From Octopus sinensis (taxonomy: Eukaryota), in assembly GCF_006345805.1 (NCBI RefSeq), contig NC_042998.1:117924001-117988000 (forward strand): a DNA stretch of 64,000 nucleotides, given 5' to 3'. The notes under the pieces were generated by a model. It was not told the DNA's origin. It saw nothing but the letters and a program-made list of their open reading frames with translations, and did not search any database. Position 1 is the first letter of the stretch. Each line of letters opens with the position of its first letter. Position numbers and translations under genes: made by a program. Shown here in pieces: positions 7,062 to 58,093 of the stretch.

Positions 7062-7136
7062 GTCTTACAGACGTTTCTGGGATAACCCTAAATGTAGGTT
7101 AGCATTCCATGCACTGGCTATTCCATCATCAGAGAC
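7062..7136 (-). ncRNA. Type I hammerhead ribozyme with intact catalytic core
   Basis: Minus strand: GTCT-CTGATGA-TGGAATA...TATCCCA-GAAAC-GTCT-GT-A-AGAC. Stem I GTCT/AGAC, GUA cleavage triplet, 2-bp stem III. Confidence 0.7.
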
Positions 7137-7887: not shown

Positions 7888-7907
7888 TATGAGAGAGAAC
7901 TCAAAAA

Positions 7908-8322
7908 GGCGCAGGAGTGGCTGTGTGGTAAGTAGCTTGCTTACCAACCACATGGTTCCGGGTTCAGTCCCACTGCGTGGCACCTTGGGCAAGTGTCTTC
8001 TGCTATGGCCTCGGGCCGGCCAAAGCCTTGTGAGTGGATTTGCTAGACGGAAACTGAAAGAAGCCCGTCGTATATATGTATATATATATATGTGTGTGCG
8101 TGTGTGTTTGTGTGTCTGTGTTTGTCCCCCTAGCATTGCTTGACAACCGATGCTGGTGTGTTTATGTCCCTGTCACTTAGTGGTTCGGCAAAAGAGACCA
8201 ATAGGATAAGTACTGGGCTTACAAAGAATAAGTCCCGGGGTCGAGTTGCTCAATTAAAGGTGGTGCTCCAGCATGGCCGCAGTCAAATGACTAAAACAAG
8301 TAAAAGAGAAAAAGAGAAAAAG
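7908..8322 (+). mobile_element. Full-length tRNA-derived SINE (octopus-type)
   Basis: A box TGGCTGTGTGG, B box GGTTCAGTCCC, internal (TA)/(TG), tail GGTGGTGCTCCAGCATGGCCGCAGTCAAATGACTAAAAC, (AAAAGAG)n end. Serves as the empty-site reference for 37952-43255. Confidence 0.9.
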
Positions 8323-12060: not shown

Positions 12061-12129
12061 TAAAGCGCTATACAAGAATAAGTATACGAATGAAACTGAA
12101 AAAAGGTGGGTAAAGAAAAAGAATGCATA

Positions 12130-12860
12130 GTCAATTTCATATCCTATCTCTCCTTTTCTCTTTCTTTTCTCTCTCTCATTTCTCCTATCTCTTTTTCTCT
12201 CTTTCTCATCTCTCTCTCTCTCTCATACACCCATTCACAAACCCATTTGTGTCCATCATAAGTTTTTGCTCTTTATACATATCTATAATATCAATACATC
12301 ATCCAAAATACTGCCAAAATATTGCCAGAATTTACCTGGAATTTCAACTAAAAACCTGTACCTTCATGGAAATACCGACCAACATTCATATCTTTCCTAT
12401 GTTCATTATTATCCCGCCCGTATTCGTCTAATTTTACTCATGATTCTTCTATTTTAATACTTATAAACTGAATACCGCACTCGGAATCTACGTCTCTACA
12501 CTTTACATTTTAATGACAAAATATGAACTCCTATTGGATTTTTCATAGCACGACAAGAAGCATTTCTCCCACTTCTACACACCACTTTCCTAGGATAATT
12601 GAACTGCAACTATAACATCTTTATATATTTTTATTTTTATTTTTATTTCTACATTCATTCTATTATTTCCCTATATACTCCTTATTTCCTTCCTTTTCCA
12701 AAATAACTCCTAATATTGAACTCTAATATTTCCCTCTATTTAACCATATCACATCGTTTCTGATGAAGGGATGTCTCTAATACGCTAGAAAGAGTTGTAA
12801 GACTAACTTTTTCTTTATAAATGTCCTGACAATTCCACACATCCTTCGCCTTGTCTCCTT
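12130..12860 (+). repeat. PLE pLTR-like repeat with decayed hammerhead (12756-12803)
   Basis: Homologous to 7062-7626. GTTT-CTGATGA-AGGGAT...-GAAAG-AGTT-GTA-AGAC. Confidence 0.55.
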
Positions 12861-14920
12861 TTATTTAAAACACACTCACATATTTTTGTTTCATACTCCT
12901 TACTCTCCAGAACCTTTTCCGTTTGAGTATCGTTGTTTGTACTGTGCTTGACACCACTGTCACTGATTCTGAGGAAAATATATTGCAACATTATTTACAG
13001 GATGAACGGATTACTGAGTGCAAAGAGGTTAAACATATTTTTGGGGCTTTCTTTGTTTCGGAAGATGACGAGCTTTACCTTATTTCGCGTAACAATATAC
13101 TTATAAATTAACTCATTTTATTATTTCCGTTTTGGAAATGCAAATATCCTTTGGGAATTTGGCGTTACGTCAATTCGATGAAATCATTCAGAAAAACATT
13201 CTCTTACGCATCCTCAATCAGAAATCGTTAAGTTATTATGGTACTGCCAATGTGAAAAGACGATAGCAAAATATATAAAAGTAGACGTTAGGTTCGGAAG
13301 GAAAATGCGTTTCAGGAGAAACGCTGCTTAAGTGTAAACGGATGAAGAATCTGAAGTTATCGCATTTCATATGCGCTTTCATCGTTCAATAGAAAAAAAA
13401 ATGCAATTCGATCAACGTCGCTATTATATTACTAGTTTCTTGCCTGCTATTATAAATACTGTTATGTCAGATAACATGATTGATAGTCTCTGCAGATTAT
13501 TACAATACACAGATACACGGACACACACACGCTCACACACTCACACATATATTTGTACATACATACACACATGCACACTCACACATATATGCATGTATAT
13601 ATGTATATTTCACTTGGATGGTAGTGACGGTAGTCTCAGTTTGGGGGTGACTGTTTATATTTTGTTTTTCCAAATGAGCACCTTTTGATTTGTTTCACAT
13701 TTATTTGTGAAGTTAGACGAAGTTGGCTGCTGTATTTGTAGTGACGTTGTTACTCCCCTGTAACAAACAACAATACTGAATACTTCTATTCGTAGTTTTA
13801 ACGCTCTGTGTTCTATGAGATTTTGCTACATTTCACATTCTGGACCCATTTGTTGTATTATTCGGAATACGTCAATATCTTTGATTTCCAAAGAGAATTC
13901 ATGTAAATTGTTTCTTATGTAGCCAATGGAACAATTTCTTGATATCTGTGGCCAGGTGCTATTATCAGACAGTTTCTATTTTTAAAAAAAATCTGAAAGA
14001 CAATGGATTACACGCAAATATTAATCCAGAGTCGAAAGATTCAAGCATAATCACTAACAAGACAGTGTAATACGATCTTACAAACGCGAATATCGTCACT
14101 GAAATATAAGATGAAAACATGTACCACACTACGATCGAAAATAGTGGAAAGACATCAACAACTTTAACTAGACGCATTGATTATAAATTCATTTAAAGAG
14201 TGTCGTTATTTATACATAATTACAATGTATGGCATAATCCATTTGTCACTGAAATATTCGAAATTTTAGATTTACAAATAAAAACATTTCATTAGCAATC
14301 GTTTTGACCTTTTAACACTTATATGAAATAACCTATGCTATGGGTGTCGAGTTCCATGTCGCAATGAGGTAATATTTATTTACACATCATCAAATATGTA
14401 TGGTAAACTCTAATGCAATTAAATATCTAATATATATATATAATCTCTAGATGAACCCGAATATTTATGAAATGACAAATTAGATAATAATTATTAGTTG
14501 CGTACATAATTAATTATAAATCATTTATATTCAAGTTGTTAGATATTACATAATGCTCTTGTATACTGTTGCATGGAATATTCATTGATGATGCATTTAC
14601 TTTCTCACAGTGCATCTGTTAAATATCATTTGTACTTGCAATCTGAATAGACTATGTCAATTTAATAATACGAAGTTAGATTTACAGACGAACACACAAA
14701 TTCTACTGGTATATAAGTTCTCATAAATATTTACCTGTAATACTCACGCACGTATACTTGCACACAAACACACAATTATTTATCTATACTTATACGTTTG
14801 TCTATATGTGCTTGTTTCTCTATTTATATATGTACGTATCTATATACAGTGTTATGTACATATACGTACATGTGATGAATAAATTATAATGATAAATTAT
14901 GTGTGCGTGCGCGTATATTT

Positions 14921-14921
14921 T

Positions 14922-14983
<62 letters not shown>

Positions 14984-15002
14984 ATAATAGTAGTAGTAGT
15001 AA

Positions 15003-15063
<61 letters not shown>
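14921..15063. repeat. (TAG)n microsatellite
   Basis: Direct reading. Confidence 0.95.
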
Positions 15064-15064
<1 letters not shown>

Positions 15065-15148
15065 CTGGTGGGGGCAACTGAAAATTAACATACAGACACA
15101 TATGTCATACAAATTACATTTTATATATAATTTATACGATTAATTCTT

Positions 15149-15493
15149 GGAGGCGCAATGAACCAGTTTCTGGGGTAGCGGACTTGCGGTCGTAGGATCG
15201 CGATTTCGATTCCCAAACCGGGCGTTGTTAGTATTTATTGAGCGTTTTGAGCATTTACGAACCCTACTGCATTCTTTCATCACAACTTTCTCTCATTCTT
15301 TTTTCCTGTTTCTGTTGTACCTGTATTTGAAAGGACCAGCCTTGTCACACTCTATGAGACGCTGAATCTCACCGAGAAGTACGTTAAGTGTCCACGTGTC
15401 TGTGGAATGTTCAGCCACTTGCAGGTTAATTTATTGAGAAGGCTGTTCCGTTGATCGGATCCACCCTCGTCGTCGTAAACGACGAAGTGCCAC
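15149..15493 (+). mobile_element. tRNA-derived SINE (second family)
   Basis: GGAGGCGCAATG...GGTAGCGGACTTGCGGTCGTAGGATCGCGATTTCGATTCCC head with A- and B-box-like motifs, followed by a SINE body. Confidence 0.7.
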
Positions 15494-16200
15494 GGTAGGA
15501 TTAATTCATTTCACTTATGAAAGACTTTATATTATGAAAGACTTTGGCATGTATTATTCAACAATGTTCAAAGTGATTAAATTATTTCAGTCGGCAGCAA
15601 GAATATTTCAGTATGGACTGCTCAAATATAATATGCCTTTGGCGTAGTTATTTCTTTTTAATATGACATACGAATACGTCATCACACTTAAATAAGAGCC
15701 CGTACCATTGTTATCTTTGAAGCTTAATATATATTTATGGAAATATTCCGTTATGTTTCTTTTGCAACGTCAAATCTTTTTGAACGTGTACGCGCGCGCG
15801 CGTGAGTGTGTGTGTGTGTGTGTGTGTGTGCGCGTGTGTGTGTATGCGTTTACTCGTACATGTGTTATTGTTTTGGTTTTACGGTCAATTATGAGAAGAT
15901 AATTTTACATTGCACTGAGATGTTACGCAAAACATTTGTAGAGTAACAAATTTATCTGAAAAAGAACGTTGACACTGACTTCGTGGTTTCGGCTAGTTAA
16001 AACATCATCGAATACAGGTATCGTGTATACATTATATACATATGTGTGTAGGTATGTATGTTCCTCTCTCACACACGCTCTCTCTCTCCCTCTCTCTAAC
16101 TCTCTATCTCTATCTATCTATCTATGTGAGAGTGTGTGTAAGAAAATTATAAATGACACTAAATATGATTAGGGCATTAGACCACCTACATTGCTATATA

Positions 16201-17043
16201 TACAGGTTGCAGTGAATAAATTGTCGTCTAAATTACGCAAAAATGAAAATAATACCGACAACCCATTTCAACAGATATATGTACCAAAATTACATAAACA
16301 TATCTTGAAATGCTAAAGCTTTTATTCAATAAAATCGCCGGCCTTGGTCTCCAGGCGACTTCGGAATCTCCTGCAACTCTTCTGGACGGTCTCCTTGTTT
16401 AAGTTGGTGAATGCTGCCATAAACCTTGCCTTCAGTTCATCTTTAGTGTTACAAGGAATTTTGTTGGCCTCCCGCTCAACTGCACCCCACACATAATAAT
16501 CAAGGGATTGCAATCTGGGGAGTTAGGTGGCTAGATGTTAGAGGTGATGTGGTTGCAAAAAGTGTCTGACAGCCATGTCTGGCATCATCTGATTGTGTGG
16601 CATGATGCAAAGTCCTGTTGCCAACCTCTTGACGCGAGGAAGCACTACCACCTCCAGGCACTTGATGAAGGCTTCCGCGTTGAGTTTGAGTCCGTGTGGG
16701 AAGATGTATGGAGGCATAACGACGTCATCACTAGTGATCACTCCTAACGCCATGATGTTGATTTTTATCACTCTCGGTAGATGTCCTCAGATAGCACTGT
16801 CCTCAGATTGACTTCCAAAGACTCTGAAATGTTCGTATTGGAGCTTCCGGTGCGAATGCCAAGCAATACAGCATGTCTTTTCCAAATTACTGGGAGAGTG
16901 AATTGCGTTATAGTGCTATTTTCTCACAGTGGATGCCAAACTGACCCTACAATACTATGTATTCGACAAAATTAAAATCAAACATTACGAATGCGTGAAA
17001 TTAAAAATATGAAATGGCAACAATTTTTCCCTTTACACACTAT
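16201..17043 (-). mobile_element. Tc1/mariner maT-type (DD37D) transposon remnant
   Basis: QQDFASCH...PPNSPDCNP/LDYYVWGAVE gives 37-residue D-D spacing by manual count across a frameshift. Weak TIRs at both ends. Confidence 0.75.
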
Positions 17044-22110: not shown

Positions 22111-23424
22111 GTAGTTTTATTTTTATAGCGTGCTTTCACTTCACTACCGAGCACAGCTCTGTGTGCCTTGGGTATGTGCTGTGATTTGTTGTGATGCTCT
22201 GATGGTTATTGTATGGAAAGTGTTCTGCGTAGGATGTGTGCAGTGCCTAGTAGTGCAATTTTCTGTATGTTATATGTGTTTGTAAGTCCTGGTGTTTTTG
22301 TTATGTATTGTCTGAATATTTTTTTATCATGCCTAATGCACCTACTATGATAGGAATTGTTTCTGTTTTCAGATTCCACATTCTAGTTACCTTTATTTCC
22401 AGGTCTTTGTATTTTGAGAGTTTCTCCATTTCTTTTAGAGACACGTTGTCATCAGCCGGTATTGATACATTAATTAGAAAGCATTTTTTTTTCTTCATGA
22501 TCTCTGAAAACTATATCTGGTCTGTTGGCCTTCATTTCTCTATCTGTGTGTATCGGCATATCCCAGAGTATGGTTGCTTTCTCGTTTTCTGTGATCTTTT
22601 CTGGTGTGTGCCTATACCATCTTTTTTCTGTTGTTATTCCATAATGTTGGGATAGCTTCCAATGTATGTAGGTTCCAACTCTGTCATGTCTGTGAATATA
22701 TTCCTTCTTAGCCAAGACTGGGCAGCTAGAGATAATATGATTTATTGTTTCTTGTCCATCTCCACATATTCTGCAGTTACTTGTAATATTTCTTTTCATT
22801 ACATGTTTTTGGTAATTTCTGGTGGGGAGGCTTTGGTCTTGTGCTGCAATTAAAAATTCCTCTGTTTCTGCTTTGAGTCCTGAGCCTCTCAACCATTGCT
22901 GGGATTTTTCTTTGTCTATTTCTTTTGCGTTTAGTTTAGTCCAGTATTTACCATGAAGGGGCTTTTCTTGCCATCGTTTTATCATGGTTCGTTGCTGTTC
23001 TATTTTTAGTTTGGATTTCATTTGTTTTATAGCTTTTGTTGTTTCTTCATCTTCTTCTTCTTCTTCTCTTCTTCTTCTTCATGTTTATTAGGTGGTATGA
23101 TTTCTTGTTTGTATTTGTCAGCTTCCTTAAATACTGAGAACAGTTTTTTGTTTTGCTCGTGTTTTGCCGCTATCTGGATCAGTTTTCCTTCCTTCTGAAG
23201 TAGATATTTTTGCAGTCCTATGGTGGTTATTTTATAGTAGTTTTCCAGCTGTATAAGGCCTCTACCACCTTCTATACGTTGTATATATAGTCTTTCCATG
23301 TCAGATTTTGGGTGATGCATCCTAGATCCTGTCATTATTTTTCTTGTTTTCCTATCTATTTTGGTCAGTTCATTTCGTGTCCAGTTAAGGATATTGTAGC
23401 TGTAACTTATAACTGGGACCTTGC
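22110..23424 (-). mobile_element. 5'-truncated R4/Dong-type LINE (RT C-terminus, CCHC finger, RLE)
   Basis: HHPKSDMERLY, CRICGDGQETINHIISSC, ANRPDIVF, LINVSIP...KLSKYKDL. The 3' end abuts (TAA)n. Confidence 0.9.
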
Positions 23425-24308
23425 CCCGCCTCTTGATTTCGGTAGCTTCTCTTAATTTCCTCAAAAGTGAAGAATAATAGGCTCCTGTAATTGTGGTACC
23501 CTTTGCCAGGAAATCTGTCATCACTACTCCGTCCTGGTCCCAGAAGAATGTGAGCATGACCTTCTCAGCAGAGGGCTGCACCCTTGCCTTCTTTGGAGGA
23601 GGTGATTCACGGTGCTTTCACTGCATTGACTGGGCTTTGGTCTATGGATCATAGTGATGGACCCAGGTTTTATCCTGTGTGATCAGTCTTTTGAAAAATT
23701 TTGACTCATCTTCTTGGCACATCTCCAAATTCATCCTCGAGCACTCAACGCGTTCTTGCTTCTGGAAAGGTGTGAGCAACCTGGAAATCCATCTGGCAGA
23801 CACCTTTTGCATATGCAAATAGTCATCAATGATAGTTTCCACAGACCCGGTACTAATCTTGACCTTATGGGCTATTTGGCGAATAGTTATGCGTTGACCT
23901 TCCAAAATGGCAGCCTTAACTTGGCGGACAGACGTCTCATCAACGGCAGAAAGGGGCGACCAGATCTGGGAGCTGTTTCCAGAGTTCCGACTATGTTTGA
24001 ATTCACAATGCCAGCGTTTTACAAGGTCATATGATGGGGCATCATCACCATAAGTTACTTTCATTTCATCAAAAGTCTCCCGTGGTGTGCGTCCTTTCAA
24101 ATACAAAAACCAGATCACTGCTCGACACTCAACAGGCTCCATTTCACACTTGACTCAGTTCAAACACCTGTAAATCAGAAACCACAATTAGTAGAGCTGT
24201 AATTCGCGACTTAATCTATAGAGGTATGAATAAGTGCACATGCAACATTTCAGCTAGATCAAACAATGCAAGTGGGTCAGGGGCATTACTTATTGAACGC
24301 CCCTCGTA
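23425..24308 (-). mobile_element. Mariner transposon, 3'-truncated
   Basis: 5' TIR TACGAGGGGCGTTCAATAAGTAATGC (24282-24308). ORF 23642-24142 carries the HTH, WISRLLT and ITQDKTWVHHYDP; continues KVMLTFFWDQDGVV...RRGK, then breaks. Confidence 0.9.
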
Positions 24309-26300: not shown

Positions 26301-27464
26301 ACAAGAATTGTATTGGCATTTATACATTTAGGCAGGTTTAAAGGGGTGGTGGTGGGGGACTTTTTGGGGGTAGGCATAGCGCAAAATATCATACTTGGGG
26401 GAGTGGTCAAGGGGTAAATTAGATAAAAGAATAAATAAAAAAATAAAAAAATATATATAAAAAAGAATAGAGTTTTAGGTAAATAAGGAGATTCTCACTT
26501 ATACATATACACATATGTATACATATATACACACACATACATATATACATACGCACATACATACACACACACACATATACATATATATACACATACACAT
26601 ACATATACATATCTACACATACACACATATATATATATATATATACATACACTCACTCACATGCATACACGTATACACACATGTATATATACACAAACGA
26701 CCACACATACATATACACAGAAAATATATATACATACAACATACACACACGCACACACAGCACACTAGTCCCTATATACACATATATACCATACACACAT
26801 ATATATACATACACATACATACCATACATATTATATATATATATATACATATGTGTACCTATACATAACTACACATAGACACATATATATACATACAAAT
26901 ACAGACCCATTCCCTAATTTTAATTTTATTATCTTCATTTATTACTTTTGTTATCTTTGACCGCTGGTCCCAAGGATCTTGGCTATGACAGCAAGTCCAT
27001 TTATCTGTCTACTTGAAAACAAGCACTCATTCACGCACGCACACTCATTAGCACGTACACTCACTCATTCGTACACTCATACACATACACGCACGCACGC
27101 GTTATATTCATACATACATACATGTACATACATTCACGTATATACACATACGTACGCGTACCTACAGATTCATGTCTACACTCTTAGAAGGCTAGTCTAT
27201 ACATATACACCAATAAATCTATATATATACACACATACATATACACCTACATACAAATACACACACATATATATATATATATATATACATACATATATAT
27301 ACACATATATATACATATATATATATATACACAAATATATATACACACATATATATACACACATACACATACATACATATACACACATACACATACATAC
27401 GTATACATACATACATACATCCATACATCCATACATACATACATTTATACACATACACACACCC

Positions 27465-27498
<34 letters not shown>

Positions 27499-28823
27499 AT
27501 ACATATACATACATACATATACAAATATACGCACACACATACATACATACACATATACACATACACGCACATGCACATGTACATGCGTACCCATACACAC
27601 ACACACGCGCGCATCCATATATACACACACACACACATATACATGTGTGCAAACATACATACATACTCATACACGCACACACACTTACATATACATATAT
27701 GCACACACTTACCCACATATATACATACACATATACATACATACATACATACATATATGCATACATACACACACACATATATATATACATACATACACAT
27801 ACACATACCTATACATATATATACACACATATATATACACATGCACATACTTATATCTCTACATACTCGCATATACATATATATATATATAATATATATA
27901 TATATATATACACACATACATATACCTATATACATGTATATACACACACATATATATATACACATCTACAATTTGTCTACACTCACATACATGCACATAC
28001 ACATAACTCTACATACCTACATATACATCGACATACTCGCGTACACTCATATATATACACATATCTACATATACACACACAAATATACATATACACATAT
28101 ATATATATAATATATACATAAAACACATATACACACACATACATACATTATATATTATATATACACACACACACACACATACATATATATATATAACATA
28201 CATACACATAGTATACATACATACACATATACATACATGTACATATATATATATACACATATACATATATATACACACACATACATATATCAACAATGAG
28301 GGTAAAAAGAATTAGTTATTAATCAATTTCACCAAGTATTCAGTATGTAAAAGGACCATTATTATTGAGTAAACAATGTCTGAGGGAAAATATTCTCTAA
28401 GTAGTGGAAGAGGCTAAAAAACGTGTTTGGCTGCTATTTCTAGAAAGTTCAGTATGTGGCAAAGTAATTATTTTACTAAGCCCTAATTATATAATATTTT
28501 ATACATACATACACATACATACACACATACATATACACATACATATGCATACACACATATATATACATACATACATATATACATATATACATATATACAC
28601 ACACACACACACGCACATACATATATATATATATTTTTTTTTTACATACATACACACACACACACACACATAATACATGCGTATATTCCTACTATACCCA
28701 TACATTTCTATACATATATAAGATACACATATACAAGCGTGCACATACAATATGTGTATATGTATGTGTGGTCGTTTGTGTATATATACATGTGTGTATA
28801 CATGTATGCATGTGAGTGAGTGT

Positions 28824-37063: not shown

Positions 37064-37951
37064 CTGCAATTCAATGATCATTCATTACTGATCTTTTAGG
37101 TTGAAACCGAAATATTTCAGAAAATTTGCCTTTTCAATAATCATCTATGAAGTTGTACAAAATTATAATAATGGAACTACAGCATATCAAGTTGCCATAT
37201 CTCGGAACTGTCAGGGCAGATCGCCATCCTAATGACGCTCTATCAAATCTGACACTTCGCCCGTATGTGACTAGTCTCAGAATTTTATGAATATAATATC
37301 TATTATCATTAAAATGACCACAAATAGACATAAAATCCACCCGTCGATTTGTTCGTTTCATAGCACGAATCTGAAGTAGAGATGTAACTTCCACTGTGTA
37401 GAATCCTCAGTTGCTGAAAGTACGAATGTCTTCCTGACATGCAAGGAATTCGCATGTAGTACTAATAACAACCGCGAAAATATTGAGAGATAAAGTGTTT
37501 CAAAGTCATCGAAAGTTGCATTGTTTATAACGTGCCTAGCCTGTAGAGCAGACGATAATTAAATTAAATATGTTAAATGACAGGGAGACTAAAACACATT
37601 TCACATTAAAATGTAGCGCAACCTTTTTTTTCCTTGTGTTTATACAATTTTACCCCTTTCTTTTATATTTCAAAATTGGCTCAGCTGTTTTTCAAAGTTG
37701 GCAACTACAAGTGTCACAAATCACATGTTTAAATAAAATATTAAAACTAACGATATAGTCGCTGATATATATGCAAGGAGATTGTCAAGAATGGAAATGT
37801 TCCGCCCCTAACGATTGATATTTTTCTGTACCATGAACAACACCTGAAAAGGAGGGGTAATTTATGAAATAGTTGTGAACTCAACTGTTCGACTTGCAGA
37901 TTTAATTGCGCGCTCGTTCATACTCACACATCATGGAGACAGACAACCATA

Positions 37952-37985
37952 GGCGCAAGAGTGGATGTGTGGTAAGTAGCTTGCT
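37952..37985 (+). mobile_element. 5' part (A box) of an interrupted tRNA-derived SINE
   Basis: GGCGCAAGAGTGGATGTGTGGTAAGTAGCTTGCT matches 7908-7941. Confidence 0.85.
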
Positions 37986-38030
37986 AACCTCTGAACTGTT
38001 CGGACGTGTTTTTTTGCTGCTCCAGATGAA

Positions 38031-38622
38031 CGTTGTTTCAACGTGAATTGTTGAACTTTCGACTCGACTAAAGGTAGGAATTTTGTATTTTTGTGAGCGA
38101 AGTGAAGTTTTATTACTTGCATGAATGTTTTTTTAGCATTTAATATTTTTAGCAGATAATAAGGCTCCACTTTGCTCCGGATATAATTTTTCTGCCTGTG
38201 TCGAGTGGAAAGAAAATTGTATTGATGTCGCGTTATTTCAACGTGAATTGTTGAACGTTCGAATCGACTACGGGTAGGCGTTTTATGTTTTTGCGAGTTT
38301 AGTGAAGTTTTATTACTTGCATGAATGTTTTTTTAGCATTTAATATTTTTAGCAGATAATAAGGCTCCACTTTGCTCCGGATATAATTTTTCTGCCTGTG
38401 TCGAGTGGAAAGAAAATTGTATTGATGTCGCGTTATTTCAACGTGAATTGTTGAACGTTCGAATCGACTACGGGTAGGCGTTTTATGTTTTTGCGAGTTT
38501 AGTGAAGTTTTATTACTTGCATGAATGTTTTTTAGCATTTAATATTTTTTAGCAAATAATAAGGCTCCACTTTGCTCCAGATATAATTTTTCTGCCTGTG
38601 TCGAGTGAAAAGAAATTGTATT
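38031..38622 (+). repeat. Three ~200-bp tandem monomers in the 5' UTR of copy A
   Basis: Unit starts at 38031, 38231 and 38431; units are near-identical. Confidence 0.92.
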
Positions 38623-38948
38623 TTTGAAGCGGCATAGTCCGTCTGAAAAAATTATTGTTGAAATTGTCGTTGTGTTGTCCACGGATTACCAAGGATTATT
38701 TACCAAGGGTTTTACCAACAGTGCATTTGGCCTGGATTACAATTTTTGGCCGAAGAAGTGGAAAAAAAAAAAAAAAGAACTGAATTCCTTTGTCTGAATT
38801 GAACTCTCTTTCTCTGTCTATTATTTATTTGTAAAAACTTTTTTGAACTGCCATTTTTAATTTTATCTCTTCCCTTCTGTTGCATTTTTTCATTCTCCTT
38901 TCTGTGGCTAATTTTAGTTTATCATTTTGAACTGTTGTATTTTACGTT

Positions 38949-39812
38949 ATGGCAAAGGCAAAGGATTTCACTGTGTGGGAATTAACACCTCCCAAAAAAT
39001 ATTTGCACGAACTCGAGGAAAAGACCGTGGTGTTGAGGACATATTCAAAGTCACTCGACACCATAATGGTTTTTCCGAGAGACACCATTGTGAACGAGCT
39101 GGCAGACTATATGCCAGCCGTTAAACATATTCAACGGGGAGTCAAATACGCAACGGTATGGTTGCTATTTGACTCCGCTGAAGCAGCTTGCAAATTTGCA
39201 AGCCAGCCCATTGAGGGCGATGAGATTCTGTTTCTCCCCAGTTACAAGGGGAAAAAATTGTTACGTTTATGGGTCTGTGGCCTGCCGCCCGGCTTTGAGC
39301 CCGAGTGGGTGGAAGATTCCATCCGCCGGGGTCTGAGCGGTGGTAGCGCCAAGATCCTGAATGTGAAAATGCAGCCTGCGGCTAACTGGGAAGGAGGAAA
39401 GGCTACTTTGACTCTGTGGACCCAGTCGGCCAAGAGTCTGGTTTTGCCGGACTTCCTGAAGATGGCCGGGTCCAAGTATCCGGTGATGCTAGAGGGACGC
39501 GCCCCCAAGTGTCACCTGTGTTCGGAGACCGGCCACATTAAGAAGAAATGCCCCAGGGACCAAAGTAGGATCCTGGAGAAGTTGATATCGGAGCCTCTCC
39601 CTGTCCCACCAATAGAGGGAGAGAAACAGAACGAGGAAGCGGAGACTTCCTCAACGAGAAAACGAAAAGTGGGGAACAATGGTGACCCACTAAAAGACCA
39701 GGAAGCTACGGGAGACAGAGTGGATCCGGCGTGTGCAACACCGGAACCTCAACCTCCCGTGGCCCACGGTAAAAAGAAAGAAGAGAAACGGAACGCCGCC
39801 AGCGGATTGTAA
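38949..39812 (+). CDS. LINE ORF1/Gag-like RNA-binding protein (RRM-like plus CCHC zinc knuckle), 287 aa
   Basis: Intact ATG..TAA; YPVMLEGRAPKCHLCSETGHIKKKCP (C-x2-C-x4-H-x4-C), context typical of Tx1/L1 ORF1. Confidence 0.85.
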   Translation: MAKAKDFTVWELTPPKKYLHELEEKTVVLRTYSKSLDTIMVFPRDTIVNELADYMPAVKHIQRGVKYATVWLLFDSAEAACKFASQPIEGDEILFLPSYKGKKLLRLWVCGLPPGFEPEWVEDSIRRGLSGGSAKILNVKMQPAANWEGGKATLTLWTQSAKSLVLPDFLKMAGSKYPVMLEGRAPKCHLCSETGHIKKKCPRDQSRILEKLISEPLPVPPIEGEKQNEEAETSSTRKRKVGNNGDPLKDQEATGDRVDPACATPEPQPPVAHGKKKEEKRNAASGL

Positions 39813-40140
39813 CACGCAGACGGCGTCTCCAATGTCTCCTCCGCCGTTTGTGATTGTGTGGCCGGAGAAATATTATGTAGTCCTCTTCTACAAAGGAGGA
39901 ACAATAGAAAATGAAATAGGTAAAATGAGGAAGAGAAACCAATGGGAGGGACTTCGGTCCTGCATGGAGTATCCCGAGTGGCCTTCGCAGCTGGCTGCGG
40001 AGGTCCTACTCCATGACGATCGGTGCAGGTTCGTGAAATCTTTCCCGGAGGACTCCTATCAAATTATACCTGTATGCGGGGGCCTGACGACGAACGATTG
40101 CGTCAATAAAGCAAGAGCGTTCATCGGTCGGGTAACGTGA
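39733..40140 (+). CDS. Small ORF2 of unknown function, copy A (first ATG at 39832, 102 aa)
   Basis: Homologous to 42141-42554 (VLFYxGGxIE, PEWPxQ(L/V)AxE). The track start at 39733 is GTG. Confidence 0.65.
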   Translation: MQHRNLNLPWPTVKRKKRNGTPPADCNTQTASPMSPPPFVIVWPEKYYVVLFYKGGTIENEIGKMRKRNQWEGLRSCMEYPEWPSQLAAEVLLHDDRCRFVKSFPEDSYQIIPVCGGLTTNDCVNKARAFIGRVT

Positions 40141-40857
40141 ACCTGTATTTGTGTTATATTGTGATGGAGGTTTTTTGCCTCTGGAAAAACTTTTGAAATT
40201 GTGATTTGTAAAATTTGGAATTTTTGTGAAATTTTTGTATTTTTGTGAAATTTTGAAAACTTTGTAAAATTATTGAAAAAAGAACATTGTTTTAGAGAAG
40301 CGGGGGTCGGCGGGCGCTTTCGTCTTCTCCCATCACCATCTTCATTCCATCACCATCATTCATTAATGTCTATGTCCAGCCCGTAGCTACTATCTGTGTA
40401 CTGCCCTTGTGGCAAATTAAATGAAATAAAGTAGCTTTGCTAACGCACATGCGCAGTTAGTCAGTTGCTTCCTGTTCAGCGAGAGTGGACGCGAGTCAAT
40501 CAGCTCCGTCCAATTAAAGAAAAAAGACCAAAAACGGAAAGTTGTCGAGGTAAGTGATTTTGTTTATTGTGAGTTGGGCATAATTTATTGCGTGCCAATT
40601 ATTATTTCAGTAAGTTGTGTCCAACTCTGAGACAATTTCGCCTGCTCTAGGCAGCTGCCGTTTTTGTGTTCATTGAAAAAAAAAAGAAAAAACAGTGGAG
40701 GGGCGTATCCTCAGAATTCAGTACAGTTACTGTGAAAATTACCGTTGGCGGTAGCCAGTGCTGTGTTTGGGTTTGTTGAATTTATTCCCTTGTCAGAGTA
40801 CTTCGCAAGAAAAGTATAAAAATAAGCCACTATTGGATTACCTTTCGGACCCATTTT

Positions 40858-41202
40858 TGTGGAGGTTGTGTTGCATTTGCGGCGTTCCAGGTTCAACCCA
40901 GGCCGGGAGTACTGCAAGAATATTTTTGCTGTGTTTTTTCTGTTTATTAACTTTCTTTTGAACTTCATTTAACCCCCCCCCCCTTTTGTTTTTTTCTTTA
41001 TTGCGACTTTCCGTTAATTTCTTCCCTTCTGTGGAGGTTGTGTTGCATTTGCGGCGTTCCAGGTTCAACCCAGGCCGGGAGTACTGCAAGAATATTTTTG
41101 CTGTGTTTTTTCTGTTTATTAACTTTCTTTTGAACTTCATTTAACCCCCCCCCTTTTGTTTTTTTCTTTATTGCGACTTTCCGTTAATTTCTTCCCTTCT
41201 GT
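40858..41202 (+). repeat. Two 172-bp tandem units in the 5' UTR of copy B
   Basis: GTGGAGGTTGTG at 40859 and 41031; units are essentially identical and unrelated to the copy A monomer. Confidence 0.92.
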
Positions 41203-41310
41203 TGTGCTTTCTCCTTTTTGTTTTTTCAAAAATCTATCAAATTTTATTTGGACTTATGAACTTTTTTCTTCCTGCTTTTGAGTTTAATTTGAATATATTT
41301 TAAAAAAAAC

Positions 41311-42144
41311 ATGGCAATGAAAAATAACAAAATTTTGGAGTGGGAAATCATGCCACCCAAAAAGTGGTTAAAAGACCGTGAAGATAGGACGGTGGTGTTG
41401 AGAACCTACTCCAAGGCGCTTGACACCATCGCCCTATTCGAAAAGACGGCAATTGAAAAGGAGTTGGAAGAGTATTTGCCAACAATTAAATTCATTTCCA
41501 GGGGTGTCAAATATGCAACGGTGTGGTTGCTATTTGACACCCCTGAAGAGGCTTGCAAATTTGCTAGCAAACCCTTGGAGGGTAAGGAAATCTTATTCCT
41601 GCCCACGTACAAAAAAAAGAAATTGATGAAAGCTTGGATCTGCGGACTGCCACCCGACATAGAACCCGAGTGGATAGAGGAGACTATCCGCCGGGGTCTG
41701 GGTGACAGCGAAACTAAGCTCCTCAATGTAAAAGTTCTTCCTGCGGCTGCTTGGGTTGGGTCAAAAGCAATTTTGACCCTGTGGACCCAATCAGCCAATC
41801 TGGTTCTTCCAGATTTTTTGAAAATGGCCGGGTGCAGGTACCCGGTGATGCTTGAGTGTCGCCCCCCTAAGTGTCATCGGTGCTTGGAGTCCGGCCACAT
41901 AAAGAAGAACTGTCCTCGGGAACAAAATAGGATCCCGGAACAGTTAAGTAAAACCCCTCTAGAAGAGGGAACGATAACGGCCGAGAAAGCAGAGGACTCC
42001 TCAAACAGAGGCCGACAGAGGAAGGTGAGCAACAATGGCTGCTCACCAAAGGATAATAGGGATGAGGAGAGGAAGGCGAATCTTCCAGCCACGGAGGAGA
42101 CGCACCCTCCCTCAGTTGAAAAGGGAAAAAAAAGAAAAAGATGA
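41311..42144 (+). CDS. LINE ORF1/Gag-like protein (RRM-like plus CCHC), 277 aa
   Basis: Intact; KCHRCLESGHIKKNCP. Roughly two-thirds identical to the copy A ORF1 over the first ~200 aa by manual alignment. Confidence 0.85.
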   Translation: MAMKNNKILEWEIMPPKKWLKDREDRTVVLRTYSKALDTIALFEKTAIEKELEEYLPTIKFISRGVKYATVWLLFDTPEEACKFASKPLEGKEILFLPTYKKKKLMKAWICGLPPDIEPEWIEETIRRGLGDSETKLLNVKVLPAAAWVGSKAILTLWTQSANLVLPDFLKMAGCRYPVMLECRPPKCHRCLESGHIKKNCPREQNRIPEQLSKTPLEEGTITAEKAEDSSNRGRQRKVSNNGCSPKDNRDEERKANLPATEETHPPSVEKGKKRKR

Positions 42145-42554
42145 AGAAAAACGGGACATTACCGGCTGTCAGTGTAGCACCGGAATGTCCCGGAACTACG
42201 TCGGTTGGGGTTGTGCCACCGACAAGAGAAGGAATACCGTTGGCGGAAACTGTGCCGCCAACGAAAGAACTGAACGTATTGGTCCTCTTCTATAGAGGAG
42301 GAGAAATTGAAAAAGTGATGGAAGAGCACTACAAGGGAGCACCTTTAGCCTTCACACAGGACCCCGAATGGCCTCCGCAGGTAGCTGTGGAGGCCGTGGC
42401 GTTCGACGTGACGCTTGGGCTAAAGGAGCTCAATGAAGATTATAACTTGATCCCGGGCGACGCGAACTCGGAACTTGACTACGTTCTGAGGGAGGCGTGG
42501 GTGATGGTGGAGGGCGCGGGCACAAGCTATTTCGAGGACGATATGTATTATTAG
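42141..42554 (+). CDS. Small ORF2 of unknown function, copy B, 137 aa
   Basis: ATG overlaps the ORF1 stop (ATGA); homologous to the copy A ORF2. Confidence 0.7.
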   Translation: MKKNGTLPAVSVAPECPGTTSVGVVPPTREGIPLAETVPPTKELNVLVLFYRGGEIEKVMEEHYKGAPLAFTQDPEWPPQVAVEAVAFDVTLGLKELNEDYNLIPGDANSELDYVLREAWVMVEGAGTSYFEDDMYY

Positions 42555-42849
42555 TAATGGACTTAAGTCCAAAAATTGAAAAATTGTGAGAGGATTAATA
42601 CCTCGTTTTGTATTAATAATGGACTGCTAAGTCCAAAAATTGGAAAAATTGTAAGAGGTTTAATACCTCGTTTTGTGTTTATCTTTAAAAAGAACAATGT
42701 TTTAGGGAAGCGAAAGCCGGCGGGCGCATTTTGTCTTCTCCCATCCTTATCATCTTTCTTTCATTATCATTCACCTCATTAATGTCCTCGTCCAGCCCGC
42801 AAAGCTAACTTAATCTGTGTACTGCCTTTATGGCAAATGTTTTGAAATA

Positions 42850-43000
42850 AAGTAGCTTGTTTACCAACCACATGGTTCCGGGTTCAGTCCCACTGCGTGG
42901 CACCTTGAGCAAGTGTCTTCTACTATAGCCTCGGATCGACCAAAGCCTTGTGAGTGGATTTGGTAGACAGAAACTGAAAGAAGCCCGTCATATATTTGTG

Positions 43001-43040
<40 letters not shown>

Positions 43041-43255
43041 TGTGTGTCTGAGTTTGTCCCCCTAGCATTGCTTGACAACTGATGCTGGTGTGTTTATGTC
43101 CCAGTCACTTAGCCGTTCGGCAAAAGACCGATAGAATATGTACTGGACTTACAAAGAATAAGTCCCGGGGTTGAGTTGCTCGATTAAAGGCGGTGCTCTA
43201 GCATGGCCGCAGTCAAATGACTGAAACAAGTAAAAGAGTAAAAGAGTAAAGAGTA
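42850..43255 (+). mobile_element. 3' part (B box, body, tail) of the interrupted SINE
   Basis: AAGTAGCTTGTTTACCAACCACATGGTTCCGGGTTCAGTCCC... continues exactly where 37985 stops. Confidence 0.9.
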
Positions 43256-44615
43256 TACAAATATAAGTTATATGCGTTTGTGTATGTGTGTGTGTTAGCG
43301 GGTGTGTCAGTGTGTATGTTTGTCAGTGTGTGTGTGCGTGTGTGTATGTGTTTGTGTGTATGTGTATCTGTTTGTGTGTATGTGTGATGTATTTTTGTGT
43401 TAGTAGATAAACAGGAAAACGCCCAGAAATAGATTTTTCTGGTAGAATCAATAAAGTGTACATCTTTTAATTTAAGTGCATGCTATAATAGAGTTGTTTT
43501 GAAATATATAAAGGACTTTTATAAACACACGCAATTGTTTAAGAAGGAAGATAGAATATGTCATGTATAACCACGTAAGTTAATATATTTTCCGCTATTG
43601 TATGTTTTGATATTAATAGCATAATCAATTATATACTGATATTAACGCCTTTCTTCTGTACGCCTCGTATGTATATTTAACCTCTATTTAATGAAGAATG
43701 AATGCAAATCTCATTCTGATGCTATCACAGTAGGAATGTGTAGACTTTATAAGCACCATTTGAAGAAATATCTGATACTGACATCTCTATCGTCTCCAAT
43801 ATAAAATCTTTAAGCGAATTTACATGTAAAATATATGGTTATTATGTCTTATATGTCACAGGAAATACTTAGATTTTATCATTTAAACTTTACTCCGGAA
43901 CTTAAGTCTGCATGCACAAATATTTTAAATCAATTGCTTAGAAGTCATGTGAATTCACCCAACAGAGTCGAATCTATGAATACTGTAAATAAGTTGCGCA
44001 ACTTTTCTGTTCGATTATAATTTGATAATCTTGTATCAATATTGACTATCTGATTTTCGGTATTCAGTCAGTTAATTATAAAATCTATACATTTTCATCT
44101 CAAGAAACTTTTTTTTATGTAAATGATTATTCAATTGCTGCAAACGCATTTCTCTTAACGAGAGTGAAGCATAGGAAAGAAAGATACAACAAAACCAATT
44201 GAAATTTTATCTCGTTTGGCAACTTTGAATAAATGCCAGGTAGAAAATTAAGACACTCTCCTGAGTACCTATCAGCATCTTGTCTTTTCCAATATTACTA
44301 AAATTTTAAGAACCATTCTTCTTCCATTTGAAGCCAAATTTACCAACATATCACTTGTTTTTCGTAGTCATATTAAAAGTGAGCGGTTGGCTAATCTCCA
44401 AACCAGATTGGTTTTAAATTGATTTTTATTCAGAAATGTTCTCAAATACATTTTAATACCAATTAACCTGGTATTTAAAGGTGTCAAAAGCTAATAATTA
44501 TCAGATATTTCTTCTGCTAACTTATATTTTAATTTACATATTAAAACTATGATTTTTAATAACCTATTTACGTGTAAGTATATCATGTTAAATTTGGGGC
44601 ACCCTTTCTAATTAC

Positions 44616-55662: not shown

Positions 55663-56535
55663 TCACATCGACAATGCTCTTCTCAATACGTGTGATGTAC
55701 CAGTTAAGACAATCTTTTGCACTTCTTGCAGGGATGGTAAGCCAGGGATCATTCTCATATAATTTTCGGTTCCCTTCTTGATCATTCCTAGTGCTCCTAC
55801 GATCATTGGTATTGTAACCGCCTTGAGATGCCACATTTTCTCAATTTCAATGAGTAGGTCTTTATATTTTCTGAGCTTGTCAAACTCTTTCGCTGAGATA
55901 TTATGATCACAGGGGATGCTCATGTCGATCAATAAGCAAACTTTATTGTTTTGATCTTTCACAACAATATCTGGTTTATTGGCCTTGATGGCTCGGTCTG
56001 TATGTACTGGAAAGTCCCACAGAATGGTTACATGTTCTCCTTCAGTTACAGCCTCAGGGTGGTGATTATACCACTTGTCGGCAGTTTTGATATTGTAATG
56101 CCGACTTATTAGCCAGTGGAGATATTGGCCAACTCTGTCATGTCTTAATTTATACTCCACTGGAGCTAAGACTTTACATCCAGAGATTAGGTGGTCCACT
56201 GTTTCAATCATGTCGTTGCAGAATCGGCATTTTGGGTCTGCTCCATTTTTCATCACATTGGCCTGGTAGTTCCGGGTTAATAGGCTTTGATCTTGAGCAG
56301 CCAGGATGAAACCTTCGCTCTCTGCTTTTAGCCCTGAGCTCCGTAGCCACTGATGGGTTTGCTTCTGGTCAACATCAGCTTGTTTGCTGCGGGTCACATA
56401 TTTGCCGTGCAGAGGTTTCTCCTCCCACCTATCAGCCAATTGCTCGTGCGCTTTTTTCATTGCCATTATTTTTTCCTTCTTTACAACAATAATTGCCGTA
56501 CTTCCCTCGGGTTGTTCTGTTTGGGTATCCTGCAC
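55663..56535 (-). CDS. CCHC finger plus restriction-like endonuclease domain (same protein, after the frameshift)
   Basis: RHDRVG, KPDIVVKD, LIDMSIP, KLRKYKDL. Confidence 0.85.
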   Translation of the reverse strand: MQDTQTEQPEGSTAIIVVKKEKIMAMKKAHEQLADRWEEKPLHGKYVTRSKQADVDQKQTHQWLRSSGLKAESEGFILAAQDQSLLTRNYQANVMKNGADPKCRFCNDMIETVDHLISGCKVLAPVEYKLRHDRVGQYLHWLISRHYNIKTADKWYNHHPEAVTEGEHVTILWDFPVHTDRAIKANKPDIVVKDQNNKVCLLIDMSIPCDHNISAKEFDKLRKYKDLLIEIEKMWHLKAVTIPMIVGALGMIKKGTENYMRMIPGLPSLQEVQKIVLTGTSHVLRRALSM

Positions 56536-56539
56536 GAGA

Positions 56540-58093
56540 TCAATAGCAAATTTTTTGCTTTCCTATTATAATAGAATGAAGCTTCTTTCGTCTCTCGTGA
56601 TTTTCCACGAGCTTTAGCATCCAGTCATTCGATATTTCGAGATATTTGGCCAGTCCAATTGTGGTTGTTTTGTAAGCTAGTTCAAATTGGATCAGGCCCC
56701 GACCTCCTTGGGCTCTGGGAAGGTAAAGGCGATCTACGTCTGCCTTTGGGTGGTGCATCCTATTACAACTCAGCAGCTTGCGTATTTTCCTATCTATATT
56801 CTTTACTTCACTCATATTCCAGTTCAACACATTGTAGCTATAAGTAACAACTGGAACTGCTAAGGAATTTATAGCTAACACCTTGTTACGTGCATTTAGT
56901 TCAGATTTCAGGACTGCACGAAATCTCCTATAACATTCCTTCCTGATCTTCTCTTTCATGCTTGCATGCTGAATACCAGAGCCTTCATTTATCCCTAAAT
57001 ATTTGTATGTTTGTTCTTGCTCAAGCTCTCTTATGACTGTGTCAACATCTAACACGACTGAATTTGTGGTCTTCACTTTCCCTTTCTGGAAAGTGGCCTT
57101 GGCACACTTCTCAAGTCCAAACTCCATCCCGATGTCATCGCTGAATGCTTTCACAGTGCACAATAGGCCTTCAAGTTCATTATTGTCTTTACCATAAAGT
57201 TTTAAGTCATCCATATAAAATAGATGGTTTATTTTTTTATTGCCAATTTTATACCCATACCCTGTTCTGTTTAATTTACTTGTAAGGGGTATTAGGGCTA
57301 TGCAGAATATTAAAGGTGAAAGTGAGTCACCTTGAAAAATTCCACAGTTGATGTTTATATTTTCTGAGGCAAGTACTCCATTAGAGTGGTATAATTGGAG
57401 ATTCGTATTCCACAACGACATATTGTGCTTCAGGAAGTTTGAAGTCACAGAGGAAATTTTGAAGATGTCCAGCGATCTCAAGATCCATGGATGCGGTATA
57501 CTGTCGAAGGCCTTTTTATAGTCAATCCATGCGGTGCTGAGATTTCTGCGCTTGTTGTGACAGTTCTCAAGGATCATACGATTGATTAGCAGTTGATCTT
57601 TGCATCCGTAAGAGCCTCGGCGGCACCCTTTTTGTTCAATGGGGAAAATATCGTTCTTCTCCATGAATGCATATGTTTTCTCCGCCAGGATAGATGTTAG
57701 GATTTTATACGTGGTGGATAGACAGGTTATAGGCCGATAGTTTTTTGGAAGGTTGGTTTCGTTATTCTTTTGGAGTAGGTAAGTAATGTCACTTGCTAAC
57801 CATTCAGGTGTTTTCTTTGGGTCTCTCATAATTCCATTGAGCAGCTGAACTAGCTTACCGTGTGCGCATGGGAGCGATGCGAGCCAGAAATTCGGCACCC
57901 TATCTTTACCGGGGGATTTCCAATTATGGGCCTTCGTGAGTGCCTTTCTTAGGTCTGTTATTGTGATGTCTTCCCATGCTTGTTGTTGTAAATTTTGGTA
58001 GGATCCTTCAGTTTGTATAATCCAGTCTGCATTTATGTTGTACGTCTTCTTGTCACTCCAAATACTTTTCCAAAAGTTTTGAACTTCTTCCAT
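56540..58093 (-). CDS. Reverse transcriptase (R4/Dong-type), frameshifted at the C-terminus
   Basis: RT motifs as above; the frame extends upstream to the 5' junction without a start codon. Confidence 0.85.
   Translation of the reverse strand: MEEVQNFWKSIWSDKKTYNINADWIIQTEGSYQNLQQQAWEDITITDLRKALTKAHNWKSPGKDRVPNFWLASLPCAHGKLVQLLNGIMRDPKKTPEWLASDITYLLQKNNETNLPKNYRPITCLSTTYKILTSILAEKTYAFMEKNDIFPIEQKGCRRGSYGCKDQLLINRMILENCHNKRRNLSTAWIDYKKAFDSIPHPWILRSLDIFKISSVTSNFLKHNMSLWNTNLQLYHSNGVLASENININCGIFQGDSLSPLIFCIALIPLTSKLNRTGYGYKIGNKKINHLFYMDDLKLYGKDNNELEGLLCTVKAFSDDIGMEFGLEKCAKATFQKGKVKTTNSVVLDVDTVIRELEQEQTYKYLGINEGSGIQHASMKEKIRKECYRRFRAVLKSELNARNKVLAINSLAVPVVTYSYNVLNWNMSEVKNIDRKIRKLLSCNRMHHPKADVDRLYLPRAQGGRGLIQFELAYKTTTIGLAKYLEISNDWMLKLVENHERRKKLHSIIIGKQKICY

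Follow-up and report, generated by a model that had tools for sequence, protein, structure and literature searches.

A 64,000-nucleotide stretch of the Octopus sinensis genome (NCBI RefSeq assembly GCF_006345805.1, contig NC_042998.1, positions 117,924,001 to 117,988,000; hereafter the window, numbered from its first letter, with features on its plus strand unless marked otherwise) contains a tRNA-derived short interspersed element (SINE) of about 400 bp that is split at 37985/42850 by two head-to-tail elements, which we refer to as E1 and E2. Both encode an open reading frame 1 (ORF1) protein of the kind found in long interspersed elements (LINEs) of the L1/Tx1 group, and neither encodes a reverse transcriptase (RT). 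We consider it probable that E1 and E2 are a HAL1-like non-autonomous offshoot of octopus Tx1-like LINEs, mobilised in trans and homing to one position of this SINE.

Two elements stacked in one SINE

The interruption was first noticed in a sequence-only reading of the window, and the flanks of the stack bear it out. The 5′ head of the host SINE, comprising its A-box side, occupies 37952..37985, shows a 92% match to positions 1-38 of an intact copy at 7908 and ends in ...GGTAAGTAGCTTGCT, whereas the remainder, comprising the B-box side, body and tail, occupies 42850..43246 and restarts with AAGTAGCTTGTTTACCAACC. When 37930-37985 was fused to 42862-43290, which removes one copy of the motif at the junctions, the product was a full SINE that aligned end to end with the unoccupied copy at 7908..8306, our empty-site reference (target at 7930-7941; 7927-7949 reads GGTAAGTAGCTTGCTTACCAACC).

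The same target motif recurs at all three junctions, again as first described. The final 12 nt of the SINE head (37974-37985, AAGTAGCTTGCT) and the opening 12 nt of the remainder (42850-42861, AAGTAGCTTGTT) are the outer copies of the target-site duplication (TSD), and the middle junction at 40429..40441 carries the motif with one extra T (AAGTAGCTTTGCT), serving both as the right TSD copy of E1 and as the left TSD copy of E2. Allowing for one mismatch, we counted three instances of the 12-mer AAGTAGCTTGCT in the 64-kb window (at 7930, 37974 and 42850), where 0.35 would be expected.

The target falls within a predicted 8-bp hairpin, GGUAAGUA-GCU-UGCUUACC, between A-box-like and B-box-like motifs that we assigned by eye, which agrees with the placement originally proposed. 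Because ARAGORN and Rfam called nothing tRNA-like anywhere in the window, we regard the SINE head as a diverged tRNA derivative. With its A-box and B-box sides now 4.9 kb apart, it is reasonable to infer from the geometry that the RNA polymerase III (Pol III) promoter of this SINE has been destroyed, as first suggested.

Anatomy of E1 and E2

E1, an RT-less Tx1-like derivative of 2,443 bp, spans 37986..40428, and E2, which belongs to a diverged subfamily, spans 40442..42849 (2,408 bp). Both 3′ termini read ...TGAAATAA and both 5′ termini AAC; the sequence-only reading had given both as shared ends, and the 3′ terminus stands, whereas the AAC start holds for E1 and E2 and not as a family feature, since the two further O. 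sinensis copies described below start with TCC. The 5′ untranslated region (UTR) of each element is about 0.9 kb long and includes tandem monomers, namely three of 200 bp in E1 (38031..38622, 95% matches) and two of 172 bp in E2 (40858..41202, 98% matches). By analogy with the monomers of L1, the E1 array is a candidate internal promoter region. A splice-donor-like GGTAGG/GGTAAGT, which may mark either a 5′UTR intron or a conserved promoter element, lies about 90-110 nt from the 5′ end in E1 (38085-38100, and in each monomer), in E2 (40549-40556) and in the further copy L001 (L001:9585-9592).

Downstream of the 5′UTR lies ORF1, of 287 aa in E1 (38949..39812, with RRM-like regions at about residues 26-99 and 103-181 and a CCHC knuckle at 188-201) and 277 aa in E2 (41311..42144, also with two RRM-like regions and a CCHC knuckle). 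It is followed by a second, smaller ORF, which we refer to as ORFb (39778..40140 in E1, 42141..42554 in E2), and each element closes with a conserved 3′ segment (40277..40428 in E1, 42687..42849 in E2; 80% identity), which in E1 consists of a GC-rich hairpin and then ...CTGTGTACTGCCCTTGTGGCAAAT..TGAAATAA. A covariation analysis of this segment, with two sequences only, found one-sided changes alone and was uninformative. An AATAAA spans the junction between element and target, and neither element has a poly(A) tail.

At the DNA level, E1 and E2 can be aligned only in the core of ORF1 (74%) and in the last ~150 nt (80%). Because their UTRs are otherwise unalignable, we take them for two old subfamilies and not for a local duplication, in keeping with the earlier claim of two diverged subfamilies in one site. 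That neither encodes an endonuclease or RT, also claimed at the outset, is confirmed by the ORF listing, in which nothing besides ORF1 exceeds 137 aa, by Pfam, which matched zf-CCHC only, and by the 2.4-kb size, which leaves no space for these enzymes. ORF listing, Pfam and inspection of the sequence likewise revealed no transposase and no inverted repeats at the termini, so that E1 and E2 do not have the features of Dada-type DNA transposons. Nor are they SINEs themselves: they are 2.4 kb long and protein-coding, and T-runs near the 5′ end would stop Pol III.

ORF1 belongs to the L1/Tx1 group of LINEs

The ORF1 proteins of E1 and E2 share 60% amino acid identity (73% positives), near the two-thirds first estimated, and the CX2CX4HX4C knuckle is intact in both. 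Among E1, E2 and one further O. sinensis copy, the ratio of nonsynonymous to synonymous substitution rates (dN/dS) is 0.19-0.25 at a dS of about 1-1.5. ORF1 is under purifying selection, which answers, at a ratio of ~0.2, the comparison between copies that had been suggested with the first description.

Pfam and PDB sequence searches with ORF1 matched the CCHC knuckle alone. An AlphaFold2 model of E1 ORF1 (42-sequence alignment, mean pLDDT 66) nevertheless shows two beta-alpha-beta-beta-alpha-beta units followed by the knuckle, and its best Foldseek matches were tandem-RRM proteins (SFPQ/NONO, hnRNP A1 UP1 and HuR). The initial description, an intact ORF1 with an RRM-like domain and a CCHC knuckle, was correct as to intactness and knuckle but not as to a single RRM, for the model has two RRM-like folds.

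A single-sequence search of 5.8 billion proteins returned one close relative, the uncharacterised O. sinensis protein P0001, and a profile search of 1.84 billion representatives returned 104 distant relatives, with ~20-28% identity among the aligned ones. Genomic context was checked for the relatives whose loci were retrieved (L002, L003, L004 and L006). ORF1 relatives lie directly upstream of ORF2s with an apurinic/apyrimidinic endonuclease (APE) and RT in L002 and L003 (Exo_endo_phos, RVT_1) and in L004 (start of the APE), and the profile matches P0062, P0108, P0003 and P0008 are upstream of Exo_endo_phos/RVT_1 ORF2s. The ORF2 of L006, from O. vulgaris, is 1,132 aa long and contains Exo_endo_phos, RVT_1 and zf-RVT; that of L002 has human L1 ORF2p as its best PDB match (1e-60). 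Because its homologues adjoin APE+RT ORF2s, and in view of the tandem-RRM model, we assign ORF1 to the LINE ORF1s of the L1/Tx1 group; its layout is RRM-like, RRM-like, CCHC. The LINE origin suggested from the window alone is thereby upheld by homologues upstream of ORF2s of the L1/Tx1 type.

Many of the ORF1 relatives have an extra C-terminal domain with the motif (Y)..hK..FP.DVG (P0032, P0042 and P0067; L002:2615-3631; L006:8804-9331), which matched no Pfam family in the members and frames scanned and which, in several loci, lies in a different frame from the RRM-CCHC part. Another profile match, P0002 (1,434 aa), contains 26 near-identical repeats with one CCHC knuckle each (KIRRRTCYECGEKGHLSSLCPNK...) and was matched via the knuckle only.

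A second conserved ORF

E1 and E2 had initially been described as ORF1-only elements, which did not hold: downstream of ORF1 and in another frame, both contain a second conserved ORF of ~100-137 aa, ORFb, which is also recognisable at the same place in the O. sinensis copies L001 and L005. The ORFb products of E1 and E2 share 35% identity over 65 aa (pairwise E value 6e-8), and at the same dS of ~1-1.5 the dN/dS is ~0.4 for ORFb versus ~0.2 for ORF1. ORFb of E2 encodes 137 aa and starts with an ATG that shares bases with the stop codon of ORF1 (ATGA). ORFb of E1 is in the +1 frame and overlaps the last part of ORF1: KKRNGTPPA, the conserved N-terminus, is in frame from 39778, the ATGA has been lost, ORF1 is 8 codons longer, and the first ATG is at 39832. 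The ATGA overlap in E2 (42130-42150) is a typical stop-restart arrangement; in L001 the ATG has become ATA.

The distance from the ORFb stop to the conserved 3′ segment is 137 nt in E1 and 133 nt in E2. Because the placement of ORFb is conserved and these distances are similar, the RT-less architecture is older than the split between the subfamilies.

None of the identities that we tried for ORFb was supported. Among PDB chains there was nothing significant; the best match, to a retroviral integrase N-terminal domain, had an E value of 0.23 and lacked the zinc ligands, and we treated it as noise. As a possible APE N-terminus it gave an hhalign probability of 0.07, and tblastn against the loci found nothing. 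Comparison with the C-terminal domain of Tx1-like ORF1p by hhalign, hmmsearch and Smith-Waterman alignment with shuffles gave no support either. ORFb does sit at the position of that C-terminal domain in related ORF1s, and VKSFPED in E1 resembles hK..FP.DVG, a resemblance for which homology is unproven.

Further copies at the same SINE position

Two further copies of the family in O. sinensis (GCA_006345805.1), L001 and L005, are located on different chromosomes and have their 5′ junction at the same SINE position. In L001, which encodes P0001, the junction reads ...GTGGTAAGTAGCTTGCT|TCCTGTGCATGCG; the SINE head, ...GTGTGGTAAGTAGCTTGCT, is followed directly by TCCTGTGCATGCGTTGATTAGTTGCTTCC, akin to the 5′ end of E2 (AACGCACATGCGCAG...), which the 5′ end of L005 also resembles. 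In L005 the junction reads ...GTGGTAAGAAGTTTGCT|TCCACTGCGCATGTGCG, and after the SINE head, ...GTGTGGTAAGAAGTTTGCT, come TCCACTGCGCATGTGCG and an E2-like copy with 80% identity over 1.3 kb. Because the sequences upstream of the SINE heads are unrelated among the three loci, we count these as independent sites, and neither L001 nor L005 showed orthology to the window. L005 was reached via an annotated 376-aa gene model, P0009 (L005:10001-36638, CM016865.1), which is a chimera assembled from parts of transposons, residues 83-129 of which correspond to the N-terminus of an E2-like ORF1 and the remainder of which includes an integrase (rve) fragment.

Of these two copies, one breaks off within ORFb, and in the other the similarity ends close to the end of ORFb. 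A search for TSDs around the SINE, or around head plus element, found only chance 9-mers at L001 and L005, and a metagenome scan for the 3′ junction pattern recovered no further copies.

In O. vulgaris, 11.6% of the genome consists of SINEs (PMC13282606), and we estimate that a random hit at the same base and in the same orientation would have a probability of roughly 1e-4 per event or less. That three loci share one base suggests specificity for one SINE position, to our minds the only reasonable reading of them, with the qualifications that the sample is small and that transduction of the SINE head is a minor rival. Sequence-specific insertion at a repeated target is thus documented by four copies at three loci, with a TSD of 12-15 bp in the window, and the earlier proposal that the site is hit repeatedly has gained two copies at unrelated loci that share the 5′ junction.

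Relatives in Octopus vulgaris

The locus L006 (O. vulgaris OX597840.1, GCA_951406725.2), at 2445-17026, is occupied by at least three copies, arranged head to tail, of an autonomous Tx1-like LINE, with a unit of 5,283 bp and 99-99.6% identity between copies; the array runs past the end of the locus. Its layout is ORF1, a C-terminal domain in a separate frame, and ORF2. The short motif CAC(C/T)(C)GAYA stands in front of GGACGTTACTTTGAC in three places, namely the left flank and the two junctions between copies, the same geometry as that of head-E1-motif-E2. L007 (O. vulgaris OX597833.1, 7906-9671) is a 1.73-kb element that encodes ORF1 only (389 aa, P0010; RRM-like plus CCHC) and has no ORF2. 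A direct repeat of 17-19 nt, GCTGGGTTCG[T/G]CTA(G)CTCT, borders it on both sides, and its 3′ end is akin to that of L006. L007 is a second, unrelated RT-less ORF1 element in Octopus, and because it occurs in O. vulgaris together with an arrayed autonomous relative, L006, the RT-less life-style may be recurrent among octopus Tx1-like LINEs.

Both loci resemble E1 and E2 in the ORF1 fold family and in the plan of the 3′UTR, L007 also in having a TSD and no ORF2, and L006 in forming arrays. They differ in that their ORF1s are only ~22-23% identical to those of E1 and E2 and their targets are others; L007 has no ORFb, and L006 has the C-terminal domain where ORFb sits. The 3′UTR plan common to E1, E2, L006 and L007 is a loose one, consisting of T-rich short repeats, a GC-rich hairpin and a terminal ...CCTTGTGG/C...AATAAA no more than a few bases from the junction. 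Compared with mononucleotide shuffles, local 3′UTR alignments had p ~0.002 for E1-L006, L007-L006 and E2-L007; the resemblance to the 3′ ends of L006 and L007 is architectural and consists of short motifs only. Within the window, no other sequence shares the E1/E2 3′ tail.

The homology of ORF1, the loosely shared 3′UTR architecture and the published target specificity of Tx1 elements are our grounds for proposing a site-specific Tx1-like partner acting in trans. In O. vulgaris, 13 L1-Tx1 families have been active recently (PMC13282606).

A model for insertion and the order of events

We infer trans-mobilisation, the nick sites, read-through pairing, the order of insertion and the effect on SINE transcription as parts of a single model. 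The RNA of an element, probably coated by its own ORF1p, would be copied by target-primed reverse transcription (TPRT) with ORF2 protein provided in trans by a site-specific Tx1-like LINE. The insertion point separates GGT from AAGTAGCTTGCT inside the hairpin flanked by the A-box and B-box sides. There the bottom strand would be nicked at 5′-...GCAAGCTACTT^ACC-3′ and the top strand 12-15 nt downstream, yielding the 12-15-bp TSD. Because there is no poly(A) tail and an AAUAAA lies right at the 3′ end, transcripts should read into the downstream target sequence, which could then base-pair at the nick and so determine precisely where the 3′ junction falls. Since each insertion would regenerate the recognition side at its own 5′ end, the site could be hit again.

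The junctions of E1 bear on the order in which the two elements arrived. Its left junction reads AAGTAGCTTGCTAAC|CTCTG and its right junction AAGTAGCTTTGCTAAC|GCACATG, and the two share AAGTAGCTT(T)GCTAAC at 15 of 16 positions, including the AAC of E2. The E1 duplication is thus 15 nt long with one indel, and because it includes the first three bases of E2, E1 most likely entered a target that E2 had regenerated. E2 would have been the first into the SINE, with the SINE head and the duplicated motif, that is, the recognition side, kept on its 5′ side; E1 would have followed at the same nick position with a 15-bp stagger, duplicating AAGTAGCTTGCT plus AAC and producing the head-to-tail stack. 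Entry of E1 at the E2 junction would imply that SINE sequence farther than ~12-15 nt downstream of the nick is dispensable for recognition. The stack may instead have arisen in one step, by template jumping between two RNAs, but this would leave the duplicated AAC unexplained, and a 15-bp duplication, made as E1 entered the 5′ junction of E2, accounts better for the AAC that the two have in common.

Weighing the explanations

Internally deleted LINE copies are common, and it could be that E1 and E2 are dead-on-arrival internal deletions of autonomous Tx1-like LINEs that themselves target the SINE, with ORFb as a fused remnant of ORF2. Active autonomous Tx1-like LINEs do exist in octopus (PMC13282606; L006), and ORFb is an orphan under weaker constraint (dN/dS ~0.4), as a decaying remnant might be. 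We nevertheless consider this explanation unlikely: independent deletions would have different breakpoints, whereas E1, E2 and L005 share the ORF1-ORFb-3′UTR layout and a homologous ORFb in spite of a dS above 1; ORFb resembles neither an APE N-terminus nor any part of the ORF2s compared; and both ORF1 and ORFb are intact in the two elements. An RT-less architecture that is ancestral at a dS >1, together with purifying selection on ORF1, argues for a lineage that propagated without an RT of its own. Somewhat less likely again is that the 34-nt SINE head is itself part of the mobile unit, acquired by 5′ transduction from a SINE-resident founder, in which case the shared junction would reflect ancestry and not targeting. 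The head does start at SINE position 1 at all three loci, and L001 and L005 have a head with no SINE remainder downstream of it, although both copies show decay and break off within ORFb or where it ends, as later deletion would leave them. E2, however, is preceded by the 13-nt motif only and not by a head, Pol III transcription from the head would stop at a T-run ~25 nt into E1, and the exact continuation of the SINE after the stack, with fused flanks that give a complete SINE, requires insertion into a SINE.

Two further alternatives seem to us very improbable. The abundance of SINE copies could mediate rearrangements, and Dada transposons target tRNA and snRNA genes (PMC3706591), so that the arrangement might have been generated at the DNA level, by ectopic recombination or duplication between SINEs, by a Dada-like DNA transposon or by an assembly error. 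There are no terminal inverted repeats and no transposase, however, and the elements have a poly(A) signal at the 3′ end and an ORF1 of LINE ancestry; recombination would have to have fallen inside the 12-nt motif, and the divergence between E1 and E2 (74% identity in ORF1, UTRs unalignable) is too great for a local duplication or a collapsed repeat. The least probable explanation in our estimation is that E1 and E2 are domesticated, immobile tandem host genes derived from a LINE ORF1 (ZCCHC3-like) that came to lie in a SINE by chance. Intact ORFs under purifying selection, and the single close homologue annotated among 5.8 billion proteins, could be accommodated in this way, but each unit is bounded by a duplicated target and has its own UTRs and a LINE-like 3′ end. 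The sequence-only reading had named a single-copy, syntenic gene pair as the outcome that would speak against a mobile family; what we found, TSDs, an empty site that can be rebuilt and decayed paralogues at unrelated loci in the same SINE position, runs directly counter to what a conserved syntenic gene would show.

Several observations also weigh against the explanation that we prefer, a trans-mobilised, site-specific offshoot of Tx1-like LINEs. Only four copies at three loci were seen, and those at L001 and L005 are degenerate (the first Cys of the P0001 knuckle is Phe, and L005 has stop codons) and have neither the conserved 3′ segment nor a SINE remainder downstream. Because these copies are decayed we attribute the missing 3′ ends to later deletion; TPRT usually truncates 5′ ends and does not by itself predict 3′ loss. 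An independent double hit on one SINE copy among very many is improbable, so that the model needs a preference for occupied sites. Our searches found no autonomous partner that shares either the target or the 3′ tail of E1 and E2, the 3′UTR similarity between E2 and L006 is not significant, and the likeness to octopus LINEs is short and partly of low complexity. The elements have no RT for phylogeny, which keeps their clade at the level of Tx1 or another branch of the L1 group, and ORFb has no homologue, neither in Pfam nor among 5.8 billion proteins at E values up to 10.

More tentatively, the trans-mobilised offshoot might be an old, self-perpetuating RT-less lineage with two genes, ORF1p and ORFb, that hijacks a Tx1-like RT, targets one nucleotide only in the SINE that is most abundant in octopus and re-uses regenerated targets, giving arrays of mixed subfamilies. 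ORFb might then encode a new protein whose task is to secure the partner's ORF2p or the target, and the whole a hyperparasite that inactivates SINEs by splitting their Pol III promoter. We put this extended version forward as a possibility that we do not favour.

Comparison with known systems

The ingredients are each known: site-specific Tx1 elements, including some that target transposable elements, ORF1-only HAL1 and the gag-only arrays of HeT-A. Elements of the Tx1 clade are target-specific, and their targets include transposons, with Tx1L found in Tx1D, Tx1-Mar in Mariner-N4_AMi and others in long terminal repeat elements (PMC4494074); Dewa targets the tRNA-Leu spacer (PMC3706591). With such LINEs (Tx1L, Tx1-Mar, Keno in U2 small nuclear RNA genes, Dewa) E1 and E2 share homology of ORF1 to the L1/Tx1 type, one defined target with a TSD, a repeat or transposon as that target, precise junctions without poly(A) and octopus relatives in head-to-tail arrays (PMC4494074, PMC3706591). 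They differ in lacking an APE-RT ORF2, and with it membership by RT phylogeny, and in having the extra ORFb. R2 and R1 of the ribosomal DNA also re-use a multicopy target, and a co-transcribed downstream target is proposed to set their 3′ junction, as we propose here (PMC4494074). They belong to unrelated clades and are autonomous, and R2 has a restriction-like endonuclease and a single ORF.

HAL1 elements (Bao and Jurka 2010) are reportedly ORF1-only derivatives of L1 that have lost ORF2, form diverged subfamilies and have no sequence specificity of insertion. They resemble E1 and E2 in keeping a LINE ORF1 under purifying selection without an ORF2 and in presumably being moved by the ORF2p of a related LINE. 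Their ORF1, however, is the L1 type I protein (coiled coil-RRM-CTD) and not RRM-RRM-CCHC, and E1 and E2 are site-specific and have a second ORF; they are HAL1-like in having an intact, selected ORF1 without ORF2, and unlike HAL1 in that ORF1 is not their sole coding capacity. HeT-A, at Drosophila telomeres, encodes only a gag/ORF1-like protein, obtains its RT in trans and forms head-to-tail arrays at a defined kind of site, and in these respects E1 and E2 are similar, with the RT in trans being presumed for them. HeT-A is a Jockey-clade element that is appended to chromosome ends with neither endonuclease cleavage nor TSDs, whereas the E1/E2 site is internal and has TSDs.

Searches of full-text papers, which did not extend to Repbase and Dfam entries, turned up no account of these features together, of a tRNA-derived SINE as a specific target or of ORFb. 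If the preferred explanation holds genome-wide, one family would unite site-specific integration of the Tx1 type, HAL1-like parasitism of an RT and a tRNA-derived SINE as target, and one non-autonomous retroelement would specifically colonise and disrupt another, as a parasite of a parasite. It would then offer a natural system for asking how a target is chosen, by the partner's endonuclease or by pairing of the RNA 3′ end, why RT-less elements keep ORF1 (and ORFb), and how head-to-tail arrays arise at regenerated targets. There is a practical side as well, since compact site-specific retroelements are of interest as models of how insertion can be targeted.

Other features of the window

The window contains another LINE at 55663-58093 on the minus strand, with a 517-aa RVT_1 ORF, a 290-aa ORF with a weak zf-RVT match and a poly(A) ~40 nt past the stop. 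We considered it as a partner for E1 and E2 and rejected it, as it belongs to a different group (23% RT identity to L006) and has poly(A). At 22470-24142, also on the minus strand, fragments of a Mariner-type transposase (HTH_48, Transposase_1) lie beside a zf-RVT LINE fragment as nested transposon debris, and 26979-28121 is an imperfect TA/CA microsatellite of ~1.1 kb with long spurious ORFs on both strands.

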